In this document: positions 133 to 13,418 of the stretch, one piece after another | How positions within the stretch are numbered: the stretch's first letter is position 1 | How the letters are laid out: each line of letters starts with the position of its first letter | Sequence record: NC_005083.2 | Reading direction: 5' to 3' (one strand) | DNA: 64,000 bases | Position numbers and translations under genes: made by a program | Notes under the pieces: generated by a model | What the model was told of the DNA's origin: nothing | Database searches by the model: none | Seen by the model: the letters and a program-made list of their open reading frames with translations, nothing else

Positions 133-256
133 TGGTGGAGAGTGATGGATTTGAACCACCGACCAAAAGATTTACCTAGTTATTAAGGTTTGCAGCATGA
201 ATGCTTGTCAGTATTCTTTAACATTCTTTTGCTCTACCAGACTGAGCTAACTCTCC
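133..256 (-). ncRNA. tRNA-like RNA 1: intact acceptor, D and T arms and CCA end, with a 54-nt loop replacing the anticodon loop
   Basis: Minus strand: GGAGAGT-TA-GCTC AGTCTGGTA GAGC-A-AAAGA[54 nt]TCTTT-TGGTC-GGTGG TTCAAAT CCATC-ACTCTCC-A-CCA. Confidence 0.85.
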
Positions 257-262
257 ATAATT

Positions 263-380
263 TGAGGGTGAAGTACAGGACTCGAACCTGCGACCTCCGG
301 CGTGCATGTAAATGCAGAATGAAATCTTATCAGACTTCGTTTTTTGAGCCGGCATTCTAACCAACTGAACTAACTTCACC
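263..380 (-). ncRNA. tRNA-like RNA 2: 46-nt loop replacing the anticodon loop, G-1:C73-type acceptor, no encoded CCA
   Basis: Minus strand: G-GTGAAGT-TA-GTTC AGTTGGTTA GAAT-G-CCGGC[46 nt]GCCGG-AGGTC-GCAGG TTCGAGT CCTGT-ACTTCAC-C-CTCA. Confidence 0.85.
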
Positions 381-384
381 ATAG

Positions 385-478
385 TGATCAACAGCCCTCA
401 GAATACCCGCAGTCTACACCCTATAATAAGGGACTATACTGAGTCGTTTAATGAGTCGGATAACTCAACTGTTAATCA
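385..478 (-). ncRNA. Putative ~95-nt multibranch structured RNA between the tRNA-like units
   Basis: Closing stem TGATTAACAG/CTGTTGATCA; inner helices GAGT/ACTC, CTCAG/CTGAG, AGTC/GACT, CCCT/AGGG; no ORF. Confidence 0.5.
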
Positions 479-490
479 AATTGTTAAAAA

Positions 491-628
491 CATATAGTTG
501 CGGGTGCAGGATTCGAACCTACATCACGATCTTATGAATGATATGCGAAATTGATTGCCGTACAGATTCTTATCAGAATCAGTTTTGTGCTACGTGTGCT
601 ACCACTTACACCAACCCGCAACTATATG
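491..628 (-). ncRNA. tRNA-like RNA 3 with expanded anticodon region, enclosed by a 15-bp perfect terminal stem; no encoded CCA
   Basis: Inverted repeat CATATAGTTGCGGGT (491-505)/ACCCGCAACTATATG (614-628); D arm GTGT AAGTGGTA GCAC; T arm GTAGG TTCGAAT CCTGC; 4-nt variable loop TGAT. Confidence 0.8.
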
Positions 629-634
629 CTTTCG

Positions 635-674
635 GGATGCTTACGCAGGTTCTTCTCTACGTAAGCACAGATCC
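635..674. other. Bulged stem-loop
   Basis: GGAT-GCTTACG ... CGTAAGC-(ACAG bulge)-ATCC. Confidence 0.45.
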
Positions 675-694
675 TCAATGTATATTTTGCCTTA

Positions 695-783
695 GCTAAT
701 CACAACACAACCCAATATCGTGCGCTTTAATTACGGGATTGATGACCCGTTCGCATGTGATTAGCGTAAAAGTATGATTACGC
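695..783 (-). ncRNA. Putative structured RNA (nested hairpins)
   Basis: 10-bp perfect inverted repeat GCTAATCACA (695-704)/TGTGATTAGC (756-765) enclosing TGCG/CGCA and ACGGG/CCCGT; adjacent GCGTAA/TTACGC hairpin. Confidence 0.45.
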
Positions 784-874
784 ACCTTTTCTTCTTCAAT
801 GTCCAAGGCAAAGAGGACTATGAATACCAGTGCGAGAAGATATACAATCAAATTGCTCACCTCGCTTAATAAGT

Positions 875-1021
875 GAGAGTACATTGGTCGAGTGTAACGG
901 AATCGAACCGTTCCCACGATCTCCCTATGATATGCGTAAATTGGTTGCTGAATATAATCATGTCTGATTACAGTATGCTACGTGTGCTGCCACTACACCA
1001 ACACTCGACCAATATACTCTC
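875..1021 (-). ncRNA. tRNA-like RNA 4 (core 885-1007, ends A-CCA) with expanded anticodon region inside a 21-bp terminal stem; paralog of RNA 3
   Basis: CGAGTGT-TG-GTGT AGTGGCA GCAC...AACGG TTCGATT CCGTT-ACACTCG-A-CCA; inverted repeat 875-895/1001-1021 with one non-Watson-Crick position; insert clearly homologous to RNA 3. Confidence 0.82.
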
Positions 1022-1424: not shown

Positions 1425-1679
1425 TTAAACGGAAATGATAATGCCGCTTTCAGTCTCACCTCGTTCAAGCGCAGCGTGCTTGATCTGAAGTTGTGATACT
1501 GCTTGCTGAAGTTCAATAATAGCTTTGTCATAAAGCTTGTTGTTCTCTTTAAGCAAAGCAATCTGATCGGTCTGCATACCAATGATGTACGTTAGTAGAA
1601 CAACGTTCTCATCAGTCGTCAGCGTTTCAGGCGCTTCATTGTACTTCTTCAGCACCGCTTCGGTAGATAGATCAGTCAT
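1425..1679 (-). CDS. Hypothetical coiled-coil protein (~84 aa)
   Basis: ORF track 1425..1688; the likely start is MTDLSTE at 1679, overlapping the 57B stop. Confidence 0.7.
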   Translation of the reverse strand: MTDLSTEAVLKKYNEAPETLTTDENVVLLTYIIGMQTDQIALLKENNKLYDKAIIELQQAVSQLQIKHAALERGETESGIIISV

Positions 1680-2127
1680 TATTAGCAACCCATTCTAGAT
1701 CTAATGGTTCGATATATTCATCGACAAGGCGAACCTCTGTATTGATGAACATAGGGGTAATTACGTCGTCATAAGACAATGTGACGTGCGGAGTATAGTC
1801 AGGGTAATCGTGAGTACCACCGATAGAGATAAGGTCTTCGTGACGTTCTACAAGAGCAGGACATGACATCTTAGCAACGACCGCGTGTTTACCGTCTTGC
1901 GTTTTCCAACAGTCAACTTGTTCAACAGTGGCAACGAAAGTGGTATCTACAACGGGCACATCAATTTGCTTACGACTATAAAGCACAGTCACGTGGAATT
2001 TATCGGGATCTAACGGATTTTTTAGACGAAGCGTTTTTTGCAAGCGAACTAGTTCTTGCTTACTTGCTTCGTCTAATTTGATACCAACGTAAGTTCCCTG
2101 ACTCTCAAGGAACTTAGATAGTTTCAT
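1672..2127 (-). CDS. 57B: gp57B, 2H phosphoesterase (Acb1 anti-CBASS nuclease family)
   Basis: Two HxT motifs (KFHVTVLYSR, TPHVTLSY); position next to 57A and the tRNA cluster as in T4. Confidence 0.9.
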   Translation of the reverse strand: MKLSKFLESQGTYVGIKLDEASKQELVRLQKTLRLKNPLDPDKFHVTVLYSRKQIDVPVVDTTFVATVEQVDCWKTQDGKHAVVAKMSCPALVERHEDLISIGGTHDYPDYTPHVTLSYDDVITPMFINTEVRLVDEYIEPLDLEWVANND

Positions 2128-6804: not shown

Positions 6805-7551
6805 TTAGAATAGACCTGAAATGGCTTCAGCGCCTGTATTGAAAAAGCTGTTATATGTTTTCTCGAAGTTTTGAGTAATACCCAGTTTATCCGAGATTGT
6901 GCTTGATAGATCTTCAGTCATGTATGTTGCGCTTTCGTAAACAAACTCGACTTCGAATTCAGCCACTGCGTTGTTATTCTCGTATCCTAACTGAACCCCA
7001 CCTACTCGAATTGGATACGCATTCTTCAAGCTAGTCATCGTAACCATTTCTGCGTTACGATTGTATGTGTAAATCTCAATTGTTCGAGCATAGTTCGAGA
7101 AGAAACCGACTTGAGCAGAATCATTCGAATAAATCTGCTTAAACCAACCAAGTAACATTTTACGTTCTGGGTGTGTTGGTGACAGATACAATGACATGGT
7201 CACTGTTTCGTCGGTTTTCGCTTTTACTACGTGATGTGGCTTACGTCGAGTTTTATCTACGTCAGTTTCGTATGACGACCCTGGGATATTAACTGATTTC
7301 ACCATCATTCCGATGTTTCGTTCGAACTCAAACCCTGAGCCGAAAAGAGAAGCAGTTGACGCAAGGGCATCTTGTACCCCTACGCCTTTGATGTCTGAAA
7401 AGTCAGCATTCAAAAATGACTCGCCTGTATTCATCAACTGCTTTGCTGTATCTTGTAGCGATGCAAATCGCACCGCATACAAGTTTTGTCTGGCTAAGTC
7501 GTTCTTTGTAATTTGAGATAAGAACTTCTTAACATCTATTCCGATTGCCAT
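6805..7551 (-). CDS. 54: gp54-like baseplate-tail tube initiator (tube fold)
   Basis: DLARQNLY, VKSVNIPG, AYPIRVGGVQLGYE...EFEVEFVY tube-fold motifs. Confidence 0.75.
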   Translation of the reverse strand: MAIGIDVKKFLSQITKNDLARQNLYAVRFASLQDTAKQLMNTGESFLNADFSDIKGVGVQDALASTASLFGSGFEFERNIGMMVKSVNIPGSSYETDVDKTRRKPHHVVKAKTDETVTMSLYLSPTHPERKMLLGWFKQIYSNDSAQVGFFSNYARTIEIYTYNRNAEMVTMTSLKNAYPIRVGGVQLGYENNNAVAEFEVEFVYESATYMTEDLSSTISDKLGITQNFEKTYNSFFNTGAEAISGLF

Positions 7552-7554
7552 TCG

Positions 7555-8151
7555 TTATCTCCTTCTATAACGATCATCGTAAGCACGAACAGCAGAAATG
7601 TTGCGACCATTTTTAGCAACGAATTGTTGCAATGGCATGTGAATAACGTTGTACCAGTCATGTGGCTTGACTTCTTCAAGCGACCCTTTAATTCGCTTGA
7701 GAATGTATAATTTCACCATATGTTTACTGAACTTGATGTTTTTCACTCGACCCCAATCGATCATTAATCGTGTGGAGTTGCTCACTGTTTTCGTGTTAGC
7801 ATATCTAAGTAATGTGGTTAAAAATTTCTCGCGATCTTTGGGTGGGATGTAATGCAAGTTCAAGCCTAGCATATAGCCTTTTTGTTGCCCCAAGCAGATG
7901 ATGCACGGAAATTTATCCCAGTATGGTAACTGGTGTTTAGTTTTTGCGTCGTACGCGAAAACATACATGTTGCCTTTGTGAGGAACTTGCACTTTTCGAC
8001 TACGAATTGCATCATGAACGCGCTTTTTGAACCACGCCAGTGATTTGCGCTGATTCTTTGCAATTGGAGTACGACCAAGCTCGTGTGTTTGAGCTTTGAA
8101 GCTGTCAAGAAGACTCTCTTTTTTCTTCTTTGCTCTTTCTGGTCTAGCCAT
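7555..8151 (-). CDS. 2: gp2 DNA end protector
   Basis: YDAKTKHQLPYWDKFP, GLNLHYIPP motifs. Confidence 0.95.
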   Translation of the reverse strand: MARPERAKKKKESLLDSFKAQTHELGRTPIAKNQRKSLAWFKKRVHDAIRSRKVQVPHKGNMYVFAYDAKTKHQLPYWDKFPCIICLGQQKGYMLGLNLHYIPPKDREKFLTTLLRYANTKTVSNSTRLMIDWGRVKNIKFSKHMVKLYILKRIKGSLEEVKPHDWYNVIHMPLQQFVAKNGRNISAVRAYDDRYRRR

Positions 8152-10391: not shown

Positions 10392-11663
10392 ATGTTTGAA
10401 ATGCGCTCCGCTAACCCAATTGAGAACTTTGTGGTTAGCAAGATTCACATACGCGGTCTTGATTTTGCAGCGTCGGTGGAGAATGAAATCACACACATGG
10501 AAATTTATGAATCGCTTAACGGGTTGGTTTCTGGCATGTTCATGTTCAAGGATTCGATTGGCGTCGTTGACACAATTCGAATGACTGGGTTTGAAGCAAT
10601 TGACGTTGAATTTGCGTCGTATGTCGGGGAGCAAGCAAACCGAGTCTATCAAAAATCATTTCGTGCAACGGGTATTTCTAGAATGCCCGCACGTACTGGT
10701 GGGTTTGAGACTGTATTGGTGCGTTTCACAAATAACTTACTGACTCTTAACGATTACGTTAAACGACCTTATGTATTCAAGAAGACTAGTATTTCGAATA
10801 TCATAAAAGCGATTTTGGATAATCTGGGCGATGAGAAGCCAGAATATGAAATTGAAACGTCTTTATATCAACGTGATTTTGTGACGAAGATTGGTAAACC
10901 GTACGACATTATTAAAAGTATCGTCGATCATGCTAGTACAGACGTGAATAACAGTTGTAAATTCATGTTCTATGAAGACCGCGACTCAGTTAAATTCGCA
11001 TCACTTGGGTCAATTCGTGACAAAGAATATGAATACATCATCCGTAAGGGTGCTGATACGGGCGATGGTAAATGGACTTCTGGCAACACGAATACAATTA
11101 CAGCATTGCGGGTTGTGGTGAAGGAACAATCTAATATGCACGAGATTTCTAGTGGTTTATTCGGATCTAGAACATATTCGCATAGTTTAATTCGGAAGAA
11201 ATTGACTACAAAAGATGTTCGTAGAAATGATTATATTGCTCAAGTTGGAATTTTGAATGACCGCGCTCATATGTACACTAATGAACTTGAGTTTGCAAGC
11301 GAAGTTCCTGAAACTGAGCAGCCATTAAACAGCATTCAGCTACTCCCGAACGATGGTTTTTACGAACATGACAACAAACACCCACTGGGGTCTATTCACG
11401 GCGTATCTCTTATGGAGGAGACGTATTTGAAAGCTAAACAGATCATCGTTGAAATACCCGGGAACACTAACATCACGGTTGGTGACGTTGTATTTCTTGA
11501 TTATCACGCGGTGACTGGTGAGAATCATTCTAGTTTAGACGCATCGGGTCGTTGGATTGTTCATGAGTTGAAGCACCGTGTTGAACCCAACTCATTTATA
11601 ACTACTCTTGAATTGTCTAGTGATTCATCGGTTAATATCGCAATTGCGGGGAGCAAGAAATAA
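10392..11663 (+). CDS. 27: gp27-like baseplate hub trimer
   Basis: 423 aa directly upstream of gp5; FMFYED, EIPGNTNITVGD, GRWIVHELKH motifs of the gp27/VgrG hub fold. Confidence 0.85.
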   Translation: MFEMRSANPIENFVVSKIHIRGLDFAASVENEITHMEIYESLNGLVSGMFMFKDSIGVVDTIRMTGFEAIDVEFASYVGEQANRVYQKSFRATGISRMPARTGGFETVLVRFTNNLLTLNDYVKRPYVFKKTSISNIIKAILDNLGDEKPEYEIETSLYQRDFVTKIGKPYDIIKSIVDHASTDVNNSCKFMFYEDRDSVKFASLGSIRDKEYEYIIRKGADTGDGKWTSGNTNTITALRVVVKEQSNMHEISSGLFGSRTYSHSLIRKKLTTKDVRRNDYIAQVGILNDRAHMYTNELEFASEVPETEQPLNSIQLLPNDGFYEHDNKHPLGSIHGVSLMEETYLKAKQIIVEIPGNTNITVGDVVFLDYHAVTGENHSSLDASGRWIVHELKHRVEPNSFITTLELSSDSSVNIAIAGSKK

Positions 11664-12928
11664 TGTTTATGGGATTAGATGGGTTTGAGTGGTGGACTGG
11701 CGTTGTCGAAGATCGAACAACCGACCCACTCAAACTTGGTAGAATTAAAGTTCGAATGATTGGTCTGCACCCAGATAAGAAAAGTTCAGAACAAGGTATT
11801 CGAACTGAAGAACTGCTTTGGGTTCATCCCATGCAGTCTCTTGATAATGCAGCAATGAACGGAATCGGGAATGCTCCTATAGGCGTCGTTGAGGGAACGT
11901 GGGTTTTTGGTTTCTTCAGAGACAAGTTGCGTCAAGATGCAGTCGCCATGGGTGTATTGCCCGGGATTCCCGAAGATTTGCCGAACGGTAGCGTTGGGTT
12001 TAATGACCCGAATGAGAAATATCCGTTAGCAGATAAGCTTAATGAGCCAGATACAAACCGTCTAGCTCGTAATGACGTTGATCCTGACGTATATGACGAA
12101 AGTCAATCTCAGACTGCGTTTGATAACGGTGAAGCGCCTTATGTATATCGACCGCACCCGATCATTGCAAGTAAAAGAGCGGCTGAAGAGAAAGAAATCC
12201 CACTTGCTGGTTACAATGCAGAGGGTCCGAAGTACGATGAGAAAGGCACGCCGTATGCAGCACAGTATCCGTACAATCATGTTCGTGAATCAGAATCAGG
12301 ACACATTCATGAGATTGATGACACAGAGGGAGCAGAGCGTCTTCATACGTATCACAGAACTGGAACGTTTGAAGAAATTCACCCAGATGGTAGTCGAGTG
12401 ACAAAGATTATAGGCGATGATTTTGAGATTGTACATAAGAATCAAAATGTGTACATCAAAGGCAACTTGAATATCACCGTTGTTGGCGACGCGACTTTTT
12501 ACTGTCAGCAAAACGTTACTCAACAGATTGACGGGGACTTGAAACAGCACGTCAAGGGTAATGTTGATCAGCACGTCGAAATGAACGTGACTCAAACAGT
12601 TGACAAAGACGTTACGCAAGTCGTTCATCAGAACGTTACACAAACCGTCGATATGAATGTCACTCAGACAGTGCATCAGAACGTTACACAGACGGTTGAC
12701 GGGGATGTTAATCAAACTGTGGGCGGTAACGTTCAAAGTAACGTCACGGGCGATTACACGCAGAATATCAGCGGTAATTACACAATCACAGTGGGCGGTT
12801 CTATGTCTGAAAGTGTTAGTTCATCGTATACTCGTTCAGCAGCATCAATAAGTGATGATGGTGGTGGCGCAACTTTGAATTTAGCAGGTTCAGCAGCATT
12901 GGACGGCACAACAGTAAGTCTAGGTTAA
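11663..12928 (+). CDS. 5: gp5 cell-puncturing spike (OB fold plus beta-helix, no lysozyme domain)
   Basis: GVVEDRTTDPLKLGRIKVR, YPYNHVRESESGH, 8-residue VxxNVTQT repeats. Confidence 0.95.
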   Translation: MFMGLDGFEWWTGVVEDRTTDPLKLGRIKVRMIGLHPDKKSSEQGIRTEELLWVHPMQSLDNAAMNGIGNAPIGVVEGTWVFGFFRDKLRQDAVAMGVLPGIPEDLPNGSVGFNDPNEKYPLADKLNEPDTNRLARNDVDPDVYDESQSQTAFDNGEAPYVYRPHPIIASKRAAEEKEIPLAGYNAEGPKYDEKGTPYAAQYPYNHVRESESGHIHEIDDTEGAERLHTYHRTGTFEEIHPDGSRVTKIIGDDFEIVHKNQNVYIKGNLNITVVGDATFYCQQNVTQQIDGDLKQHVKGNVDQHVEMNVTQTVDKDVTQVVHQNVTQTVDMNVTQTVHQNVTQTVDGDVNQTVGGNVQSNVTGDYTQNISGNYTITVGGSMSESVSSSYTRSAASISDDGGGATLNLAGSAALDGTTVSLG

Positions 12929-12932
12929 TTGA

Positions 12933-13418
12933 ATGGCTAGTATTACACCAACAACATTGCCAATCATTGCAGAGGGTGAGAACGTCGATGTGACGTTCTT
13001 CGCTGTTATGGATGAAGGCGAAACATTGGTTGACATAAACATCACGAATTTTATACCAAATACGGGCATCACGATTGAGGGTGCTCGTTATTACGGTCAG
13101 TATCAGGATTCGTTTGATTTGGGACCAAGTGGCTTGAAGTATCGCGACACGCGAGACAATAGCTATCATGAAGTGAGTAAATTCAGTGATTTGCCAGCGA
13201 ATCCGGCTCATGGTCACGTGTATCGCTTCGAAGCGCCTAGTCCGCTGTCAACTGATTACACATACGAAGTCACAGTCAATTACGAGTATGAAGATCCACT
13301 TGTGCCTGGTGTTATCGAAGAGCGTCAGCTAATCGAAACGTTCAGTCAGACCGTAAAGGGTAAATGGGATAATTGGGCACAGCAACTTAGAGATTATATA
13401 GCAGCGGGAGGTAATTAA
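12933..13418 (+). CDS. gp5.1-like conserved baseplate-associated protein
   Basis: 161 aa between gp5 and the PAAR gene; assignment by synteny only. Confidence 0.6.
   Translation: MASITPTTLPIIAEGENVDVTFFAVMDEGETLVDINITNFIPNTGITIEGARYYGQYQDSFDLGPSGLKYRDTRDNSYHEVSKFSDLPANPAHGHVYRFEAPSPLSTDYTYEVTVNYEYEDPLVPGVIEERQLIETFSQTVKGKWDNWAQQLRDYIAAGGN

Follow-up and report, generated by a model that had tools for sequence, protein, structure and literature searches.

Interrupted tRNA-shaped RNAs of Vibrio phage KVP40 as candidate Y-RNA-like partners of a Ro60-like phage protein

The DNA considered here (the window: 64,000 nucleotides (nt) of record NC_005083.2, one strand, 5' to 3') is the final 64 kb of the genome of Vibrio phage KVP40 (positions 180835-244834); its positions 1-1500 match KVP40 (AY283928.2) 180835-182334 with 100% identity. 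Between positions 133 and 1007, the minus strand holds four units shaped as transfer RNAs (tRNAs) and carrying a large insert in the anticodon arm, and a fifth unit of this type lies outside the window. These units are weighed here as candidate relatives of the Y RNAs, small Ro60-binding RNAs whose bacterial YrlA class holds a tRNA-like domain. An initial annotation, made from the sequence, had already delimited the four units with their acceptor, D and T arms, and had given the first two inserts as 54 and 46 nt between intact anticodon stems of 5 base pairs (bp); all of this is exact. Its description of the anticodon loop as replaced needs a correction: in units 1 and 2 the shared module lies in the loop region, but units 3 and 4 and the fifth unit keep a canonical-looking anticodon hairpin and carry the module between tRNA positions 28 and 29. 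The features are the following:

Unit 1, 133-256 (minus): GenBank tRNA-Pseudo-4; CCA encoded; 5-bp anticodon stem AAAGA/TCTTT, intact.
Unit 1 insert, 171-224 (minus): 54 nt; Asn-like heptamer ATGTTAA, then the module.
Unit 1 module hairpin, 199-216 (minus): GAATAC-TGACAA-GCATTC; 8-mer CTGACAAG at 204-211; CTGCA at 191-195.
Unit 2, 267-379, core of 263-380 (minus): GenBank tRNA-Pseudo-5; CCA not encoded; anticodon stem CCGGC/GCCGG, intact.
Unit 2 insert, 302-347 (minus): 46 nt; A-rich leader TCAAAAAAC.
Unit 2 module hairpin (minus): GAAGTC-TGATAA-GATTTC; 8-mer at 326-333; CTGCA at 313-317.
Unit 2 heptamer after the module (minus): CATGCAC; A33, anticodon UGC.
Unit 3, 495-620 (minus): 50-nt module at 543-592, between tRNA positions 28 and 29.
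Unit 3 module (minus): leader TAGCACAAAACT; hairpin GATTC-TGATAA-GAATC; 8-mer at 569-576; CGGCA at 556-560; tail ATCAATTTCGCAT.
Unit 3 anticodon-type hairpin, 529-542 (minus): ATC-ATTCATAA-GAT; 3 bp, 8-nt loop; 3' of the module.
Unit 4, 885-1007 (minus): CCA encoded; 49-nt module at 932-980, between tRNA positions 28 and 29.
Unit 4 module (minus): hairpin TAATC-AGACAT-GATTA; 8-mer CAGACATG at 959-966; CAGCA at 946-950.
Unit 4 anticodon-type hairpin (minus): ATC-ATAGGGA-GAT; 3 bp; 3' of the module.
Fifth unit, KVP40 179301-179416, about 1.5 kb outside the window: GenBank tRNA-Pseudo-3.

Units 1-4 have the acceptor, D and T arms of a canonical tRNA, with a flawless 7-bp acceptor stem in each, GG in the D arm, a 5-bp T stem with a TTCRANT loop, and a variable loop of 5 nt (units 1 and 2) or 4 nt (units 3 and 4); none of them forms a contiguous cloverleaf with a 7-nt anticodon loop. 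In unit 3, the flanking CG/CG together with ATC/GAT makes a 5-bp stem, CGATC/GATCG.

Existing tools and records capture these units in part. Units 3 and 4 lack annotation in GenBank; pseudo labels on such units are also found in the records of phi-pp2, phi-Grn1 and phi-ST2, other relatives' records label them (at 113-123 nt) tRNA-Asn, -Phe, -Cys, -Val or "OTHER", and genome papers mention only "pseudo-forms". The expectation that they would be reported as pseudo- or intron-containing tRNAs was thus borne out for the annotation records. The software behaved differently from unit to unit: the Rfam tRNA model aligns to unit 1 over 136-256 with 55.5 bits and to unit 2 over 267-379 with 51.9 bits, in both cases only by skipping 49 and 45 nt, respectively, in the anticodon loop, gives no match to units 3 and 4 even at E<=10, and ARAGORN reports no tRNA across the whole window. 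No family of Rfam 15 is at threshold on these RNAs. Uninterrupted tRNA-Asn, -Glu, -Met and -Leu(UAG) genes are present elsewhere in KVP40, which leaves no decoding gap that the units would have to fill.

The shared module and its position in the tRNA

One module is common to all the inserts, and comprises an A-rich leader, a hairpin of 5-7 bp, 3-5 nt, the motif CNGCA and a variable tail. The hairpin loop, taken together with the pair that closes it, has the form C-UG(A/U)YAA-G. In the set of 54 distinct units, the loop 8-mer is CTGACAAG in 27, CTGATAAG in 16, CTGTCAAG in four and CTGTTAAG in three, and the motif is CAGCA in 37. A pattern search of IMG/VR gave at least 116 loci among the matches listed, most of them tRNA-shaped genes of 110-128 nt in which the module sits on many different tRNA bodies (more than 50 distinct ones), in agreement with the earlier proposal of one insert carried by several scaffolds.

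The units fall into two classes. In class A (37 distinct units, including units 3, 4 and the fifth unit) the module lies exactly at the 28/29 junction, and the 2 nt on its 5' side and the 3 nt on its 3' side pair with the 3' strand to give a flawless 5-bp stem, the loop of which lies 3' of the module. U33 and a purine at position 37 are found in all 14 distinct 7-nt loops of this class, that of the fifth unit, for instance, being CTGTTAA. Roughly a third of the loops have 8 nt instead, among them that of unit 3, ATTCATAA, which recurs in unrelated metagenomic units. Class B comprises 17 distinct units, units 1 and 2 among them, which keep an unbroken 5-bp anticodon stem and carry the module inside the loop region. 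As a side observation, the 8-nt class-A loops (unit 3 and loci L041, L025, L069 and L111) follow the pattern A-U-NNNN-A-A with canonical flanks, as in AUUCAUAA and AUGCAUAA, the former being kept between unrelated phages, and close orthologs of unit 3 switch their anticodon among the CAU-type 8-mer, UUC and UCU.

This architecture invites the explanation that the units are genuine intron-containing tRNAs, the module being a protein-dependent intron cut out and the tRNA resealed by heal-and-seal enzymes of the phage or the host (Pnkp-type kinase/phosphatase, Rnl, RtcB); in a variant, the excised intron might itself be the Y-like RNA. Exact deletion at the 28/29 junction restores the anticodon arm in the 37 distinct units, with canonical 7-nt loops such as CTGTTAA (Asn), CTTTCAC (Glu) and CTGTCAC (Asp), and the fifth unit, once its module is deleted, aligns contiguously to genuine phage tRNA-Asn genes. 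Candidate sealing functions are also at hand, since genes for an AAA_33 kinase, a metallophosphoesterase and a dual-specificity phosphatase lie close by in IMG/VR loci and an RtcB gene does so in a Listeria phage, and Lak megaphages, where a homolog of the protein discussed below is present, have been reported with "enigmatic" tRNA introns. Viewed by eye only, the junctions show no consistent 3-4-3 motif of the bulge-helix-bulge type. We regard splicing as unlikely. A splicing endonuclease is not known in bacteria and none was seen here, no whole-genome endonuclease search having been made; the inserts (46-54 nt) are far below group I size, and neither Intron_gpI nor any other Rfam intron matches the window at E<=10. 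The conserved core of the module lies at no fixed distance from the junctions, being 10-21 nt away from the 5' one and 8-15 nt away from the 3' one. Unit 2 is left without a usable anticodon loop (A33), the ortholog of unit 1 in phage K566 has C33 (ACGTTGA in place of ATGTTAA), some third of the class-A loops have 8 nt, and loops differ between close orthologs. Finally, no insert-free allele was found among close relatives, the matches of at least 99% identity to the spliced fifth unit being all split in two.

Substitutions in the units preserve pairing. Orthologs in ten Schizotequatrovirus relatives differ by compensatory substitutions: the unit 4 hairpin TAATC-AGACAT-GATTA of KVP40 is CTTAC-TGACAA-GTAAG in K566, different yet paired; the unit 3 hairpin is GATTC-TGATAA-GAATC, CAAGC-TGTTAA-GTTTG or CAAGT-TGTATA-GCTTG across relatives; that of unit 1 is fully paired in K566 (GAATAT-TGTCAA-GTATTC); and compensated changes are also present in the acceptor and T stems. 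In 25 diverse class-A units, standard pairs occupy 98% of cells, vs. 65% after shuffling and 35-47% with slid partners, and the observed level was reached in 0 of 500 shuffles. Changes on both sides were seen in 24 of 28 pairs, five of which belong to the insert hairpin, where one pair is CG in 11 units, UA in eight, AU in five and GU in one. Pairs were counted on a segment-anchored, N-padded alignment, which was built because MAFFT misaligned the 7- and 8-nt loops; as the selection of class A required helices 3 and 5 to be paired, their 100% pairing is circular, while their compensatory changes and all the other helices are free of that circularity. Unit 3 further shares 75.7% identity with unrelated IMG/VR units across both insert and body. 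Separately, in Vibrio phage TCU-VP03-AIR1 (L007:3952-4605) a homing-endonuclease gene replaces units 1-3 and only unit 4 is left, which indicates that close relatives can do without some units or differ in how many they carry.

Because the acceptor, T and insert-hairpin stems change in a compensatory manner, the units are not decaying pseudogenes, and the insert evolves under RNA-structure constraint rather than by the random decay that had been considered before as a contrary outcome. The idea of decaying pseudo-tRNAs with inert insertions, implied by the GenBank label in KVP40, phi-pp2, phi-Grn1 and phi-ST2, could draw on the failure of Rfam and ARAGORN to find units 3 and 4 and on the duplication of intact tRNAs by the units. 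It is extremely improbable in view of the compensatory changes found in every stem, insert hairpin included, and of the retention of the module across unrelated phage families and in hundreds of metagenomic contigs.

Other architectures of the insert were tried and rejected. Pairing between the loop and CNGCA was discarded, as the second position of the motif varies (A, U, G, C) without covariation in the loop. A closing helix between leader and tail is not general, in spite of local covariation (in the fifth unit, AAG/CTT in KVP40 vs. AAAT/ATTT in K566). A self-cleaving ribozyme (hammerhead, twister, pistol or hatchet) does not fit either: the hammerhead G8 context is missing from CUGAYAAG, and none of these ribozymes is matched by Rfam at E<=10. 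A reduced transfer-messenger RNA (tmRNA) was dropped too, since a stop ends the frame opened at the GCA of CNGCA in units 1, 3 and 4, whereas no such stop is reached in unit 2, in the fifth unit and in the majority of metagenomic units.

The DUF2828/DUF7788 protein and forms of the element outside tRNAs

Open reading frames (ORFs) of module-bearing loci were clustered to find associated families. The top family encodes a protein of about 470-520 amino acids with the Pfam domains DUF2828 and DUF7788; other recurrent ORFs encode a P-loop kinase (AAA_33), a metallophosphoesterase and a dual-specificity phosphatase. By tblastn, the DUF2828/DUF7788 protein is present in 711 GenBank phage records, often annotated as "Ro-like RNA binding protein", and DUF2828 proteins of eukaryotes are mentioned in plant papers. 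An AlphaFold model of the protein (pLDDT 68, pTM 0.60) had as its best nine PDB matches in Foldseek only Ro60/TROVE structures, aligned over the full length, among them Deinococcus Rsr (2nvo, E 1.4e-7) and the Ro60 of phage phiLo (TM 0.55), and a profile search against PDB also reaches TROVE proteins, via the vWA MIDAS region. On this modelling, DUF2828 proteins are a separate sequence family predicted to share the Ro60 fold. The KVP40 homolog is gene 0300 (KVP40.0300, 168292-169689; DUF7788 E 1.3e-45); it shares the strand of the units, at a distance of 9.6 kb to the fifth one and of about 11-12 kb to those in the window. The gene directly downstream, KVP40.0299 (L136:4209-4739), encodes an RNaseH_like protein (PF04308, E 5.9e-17) that could be a functional partner.

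Where a locus contains both a module-bearing unit and a DUF2828 gene, the two are on the same strand in 33 of 33 cases, mostly 170-2500 nt apart. Around the DUF2828 gene of Aeromonas phage APT65 lie three units with an insert and a pair of free small RNAs, with no ordinary tRNA found by ARAGORN within 20 kb, and in Synechococcus phage BUCT-ZZ01 two units start 226 nt past the gene; as both are cultured phages of other families, the linkage is independent of KVP40-like synteny. In the tRNA cluster upstream of the DUF2828 gene of BUCT-ZZ01 (L135:14164-14582 and 13042-13117), ARAGORN also reports a tmRNA with the tag ANDETFSMALAA and a tRNA whose anticodon, CUA, could make it an amber suppressor.

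Felixounavirus wV8, Listeria phage LMTA-57 and mycobacteriophage Faith1 gave no match to the strict pattern of the embedded module around their DUF2828 genes. Adjoining the gene on its own strand, these phages have small RNAs of a three-part build: a terminal stem of 6-10 bp, U(A)ACAGCAA right after its 5' strand, and an A-rich run right before its 3' strand. There are three copies in each of the three phages, two in APT65, one in BUCT-ZZ01 and one in Lak-B8. The wV8 copies are at L131:10713-10778, 10879-10936 and 11362-11487, with candidate equivalents adjoining g130 of Felixounavirus Bas63. That of Prevotella phage Lak-B8 (L137:11813-11882) is a candidate made of a stem and AUACAGCAA, about 120 nt upstream of the DUF2828 homolog. 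Another form consists of circularly permuted tRNA mimics (one in wV8, one in Faith1 and several in IMG/VR) that enclose a T arm, an acceptor helix closed by a loop, and a D arm; they align over their full length to the Rfam YrlA model, at 21.7 and 30.8 bits against a gathering threshold of 69. Altogether, 84 distinct free or permuted candidates measure 41-195 nt (median 68.5 nt), typically starting with UAGG and ending with CCUG followed by UU. In 80 IMG/VR loci picked by the protein alone, a detector of stem plus ACAGCAA gave 70 hits on the gene's strand vs. 3 on the opposite one, and the embedded form gave 8 vs. 0. A loose scan for the permuted form over the whole window returned only chance-like matches within coding DNA. 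As an aside, the DUF2828/tRNA area of LMTA-57 (L132:4968-5066, 7455-8006 and 11835-13046) contains a drum RNA whose 50.2 bits exceed the threshold, a ROOL-like RNA whose 88.5 bits fall just short of its own, and the RtcB ligase gene, several orphan structured RNAs thus clustering with the Ro-like gene.

The order of the parts around the circle is alike in these RNAs and in the units: A-rich leader, 5' strand of the stem, [loop], 3' strand of the stem, CNGCA. This shared circular order indicates that the KVP40 module is the same element, with a loop rather than the RNA ends closing the stem, and with its variable region opened and attached to the anticodon stem of a tRNA. The permuted mimics also bear on splicing, as a module fused to a body whose acceptor end is closed by a loop could release no tRNA.

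Proposed role and surroundings of the units

The four units and the fifth are probably stable chimeras in which a tRNA body carries a Y-RNA-like module and partners the Ro60-like protein of the phage, a link to which the initial annotation made no reference. It also seems rather likely that the module is kept in the mature RNA, because it is fused as well to tRNA mimics that can never be released and exists on its own; the earlier picture of a stable RNA displaying a payload is the best fit for the same reasons, splicing being senseless in the free-standing and permuted forms. With the module probably binding the protein, the units would most likely be the KVP40 equivalent of Y RNAs, especially of the tRNA-mimicking YrlA class.

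In the proposed mechanism, early-type promoters would drive the units, whose transcripts would mature in the manner of tRNAs, through RNase P and either trimming or CCA addition at the 3' end. As a binding platform, the module would recruit the ring protein KVP40.0300, and the tRNA part would show its elbow and acceptor end (plus the anticodon hairpin in units 3 and 4) to a second partner, possibly an enzyme that acts on tRNAs, a nuclease or a defence protein of the host; the resulting ribonucleoprotein (RNP) might serve RNA surveillance or repair, or counter-defence, during infection. Two sigma-70-like sites, consensus matches only, lie upstream of unit 4:

Promoter-like match, 1408 to 1381 (minus): TTGACT-16-TAGAAT.
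Promoter-like match, 1316 to 1289 (minus): TTGACT-16-TAAGAT.

Several points weigh against this interpretation. The flawless stem rebuilt by deletion at the 28/29 junction, the U33 and purine 37 of every distinct 7-nt loop, and the alignment of joined exons to genuine tRNA-Asn are what a spliced intron would leave. The motif is unlike the GNCGAA/CGAA known to bind Ro60, these RNAs score below the gathering cutoff of every Y-RNA model in Rfam, and expression, RNA ends, insert retention and protein binding are deduced from sequence comparison. In KVP40, moreover, the protein gene is not adjacent to the units, a tRNA cluster intervening, and DUF2828 genes generally neighbour tRNA clusters, which partly confounds the linkage; APT65, with no ordinary tRNAs nearby, counts against a purely positional explanation.

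Counter-defence is plausible in the light of Bas63 gp130, a Felixounavirus DUF2828 homolog that experimentally counters the Ppl defence, the authors of that study guessing that some of the adjacent "tRNAs" may be Y RNAs. The more specific proposal made initially, a decoy for PrrC, RloC or AriB, is not supported here. More generally, the units could be free-standing decoys or inhibitors of tRNA-targeting host nucleases, acting through the tRNA body and the anticodon-like loops independently of the Ro-like protein. Directly upstream of the array lies a gene for Acb1, an anti-CBASS 2H phosphodiesterase homologous to T4 57B (window 1672-2127, minus; PF23474, E 1.7e-46), so that an anti-defence gene adjoins the units, and both the middle of the module loop (GAU, GAC, GUU, GUC, GUA) and the anticodon-type loops change fast between orthologs, as in an arms race. 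Independent decoys leave unexplained the invariant CNGCA motif and loop flanks, the tight same-strand linkage with DUF2828, and the free small RNAs that bear the motif with no tRNA part; nor do they point to a particular nuclease. We consider this explanation quite improbable, the anticodon-nuclease decoy having a small chance as a sub-case only.

Other features surround the array. Between the promoter-like sites and unit 4 (window about 1010-1290, minus), some 270 nt contain two similar hairpins (CATCGTTCTCGCCTCTTCTTGAAGATGAAC and CTCATCGTTTCTGTCTCTTCTCTGAAGATGAG) and a structured stretch, for which Rfam gives only a weak match to a tmRNA fragment (12.5 bits). KVP40.0319 (window 696-917, minus) is a small hydrophobic ORF between units 4 and 3 that, as annotated, begins inside the 3' end of unit 4. 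It is kept in 13 related loci, and Pfam gives no match to it. Beyond the window, the cluster holds a further tRNA-like element of 125 nt (L001:6909-7033; KVP40 about 178302-178426), with an acceptor-like stem and a T arm, and no D arm, CCA or CNGCA module. Two more KVP40 genes with pseudo labels may be functional tRNAs: tRNA-Pseudo-2 (L130:6939-7020), which can be read as a class II tRNA whose variable arm is long and whose anticodon is GUA (Tyr), and tRNA-Pseudo-1 (L130:5082-5156), with the loop UUGCAAU (Cys).

In the searchable literature on KVP40 pseudo-tRNAs, phage tRNA introns and DUF2828, the module, RNA partners of DUF2828 proteins and tRNA-embedded Y-like elements are not described. 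The Ro60/Y-RNA type of RNP is known; the topology, the motif and the protein subfamily considered here are new. Five "pseudo-tRNAs" of a model marine phage, together with hundreds of similar unannotated genes in viral metagenomes, become candidates for components of a defined RNP, and the Ro60-like family of more than 700 GenBank phage records, one member of which defeats a bacterial defence, gains a candidate for its missing RNA partner. Y-RNA biology would likewise obtain a second, sequence-distinct pair of protein and RNA for comparison.

Comparison with known RNA systems

The closest known system is YrlA (RF02553). YrlA RNAs are encoded within 4 kb of a Ro60 ortholog and on its strand in 254 bacteria and 22 phages, and the Ro60 of phage phiLo has as ligands two Y-like RNAs encoded next to it and is able to form an assembly with the host PNPase. 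The KVP40 units resemble YrlA in joining a tRNA-like domain to a helix that, as predicted for KVP40, binds a ring protein of the Ro60 fold; they are also encoded on the strand of the protein gene, but 9.6-12 kb away from it instead of near, and permuted relatives of their module align to the full YrlA model. On the other hand, YrlA is circularly permuted, whereas the units keep the normal 5' and 3' ends of a tRNA, often with an encoded CCA, and many of them retain an anticodon hairpin. Their protein-side helix is closed by a conserved loop and not by a terminal 5'/3' stem, their motif is CNGCA(A) in place of GNCGAA/CGAA, and the putative partner belongs to DUF2828/DUF7788 and not to TROVE. No unit of the window matches the YrlA model, whose sole match there (29.8 bits) runs across the boundary between units 2 and 1.

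A second resemblance concerns the Class I RNAs of Dictyostelium (RF01414), which are 42-65 nt long, have a DUSE promoter and no tRNA part, and have been reported as unique to Dictyostelia, an RRM protein being the only direct binder named. Both types of RNA have a covarying stem (about 6 bp in Class I) with a motif right after its 5' strand: CCUUACAGCAA in Class I (11 nt; C6, C9, A10 and A11 near-invariant) and U(A)ACAGCAA or CNGCA(A) in the phage RNAs. The Class I termini, 5'-AAG...CUGU-3' with G pairing to C, are similar to the UAGG...CCUGUU of the free phage RNAs, and joined via one nucleotide they match the KVP40 hairpin loop CUG(A/U)-Y-AAG. The Rfam Class I model aligns weakly and over its full length to RNAs of APT65 (28.4 bits, E 0.35) and Faith1 (18.9 bits, E 0.53), neither being significant alone at a threshold of 41.5 bits, and does not match the units of the window. 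Class I RNAs are eukaryotic, and the KVP40 module belongs to a phage and is embedded in tRNAs; the resemblance is a lead rather than a finding, and may reflect homology or convergence. A broader and tentative possibility, which we hold somewhat less probable than its negation, is that "stem + CNGCA(A)" is the RNA half of a widespread, hitherto unrecognised RNP with DUF2828-family proteins of the Ro60 fold, existing in three topologies (free, permuted mimic and tRNA-embedded) as a tool for counter-defence or RNA repair, with the Class I RNAs in the same family. If the likeness reflects common descent or a common protein partner, the function of Class I RNAs would become directly testable.

Intron-containing tRNAs, be they archaeal or eukaryal, bacterial with group I introns, or those of Lak phages, whose introns have been described as conserved, likewise carry a discrete insert in the anticodon arm whose removal restores a canonical tRNA. 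The KVP40 insert differs in its length of 46-54 nt with a motif of its own, in lacking a group I core, in its location mainly at 28/29 inside the stem, and in the existence of the same module outside tRNAs. The small stable RNAs species 1 and 2 of T4 (rnaC and rnaD), to which the units had initially been likened, are also encoded in a T4-like tRNA cluster, and rnaC has a T arm, but neither has a CNGCA module adjoining a hairpin; their sequences were read and scanned, and homology was rejected, as no alignable similarity was found. A hairpin loop of rnaD (L004:1554-1672), CUGAGUAAG, resembles that of the module, with ACAGCAG about 50 nt downstream and not adjacent.

Engineered tRNA scaffolds carry a foreign structured RNA in the anticodon arm, presumably gaining processing and stability from it. 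The KVP40 units would be a natural case of a tRNA serving as the scaffold for another functional RNA, and differ from those constructs in being conserved and in displaying as their payload one specific, protein-associated module.

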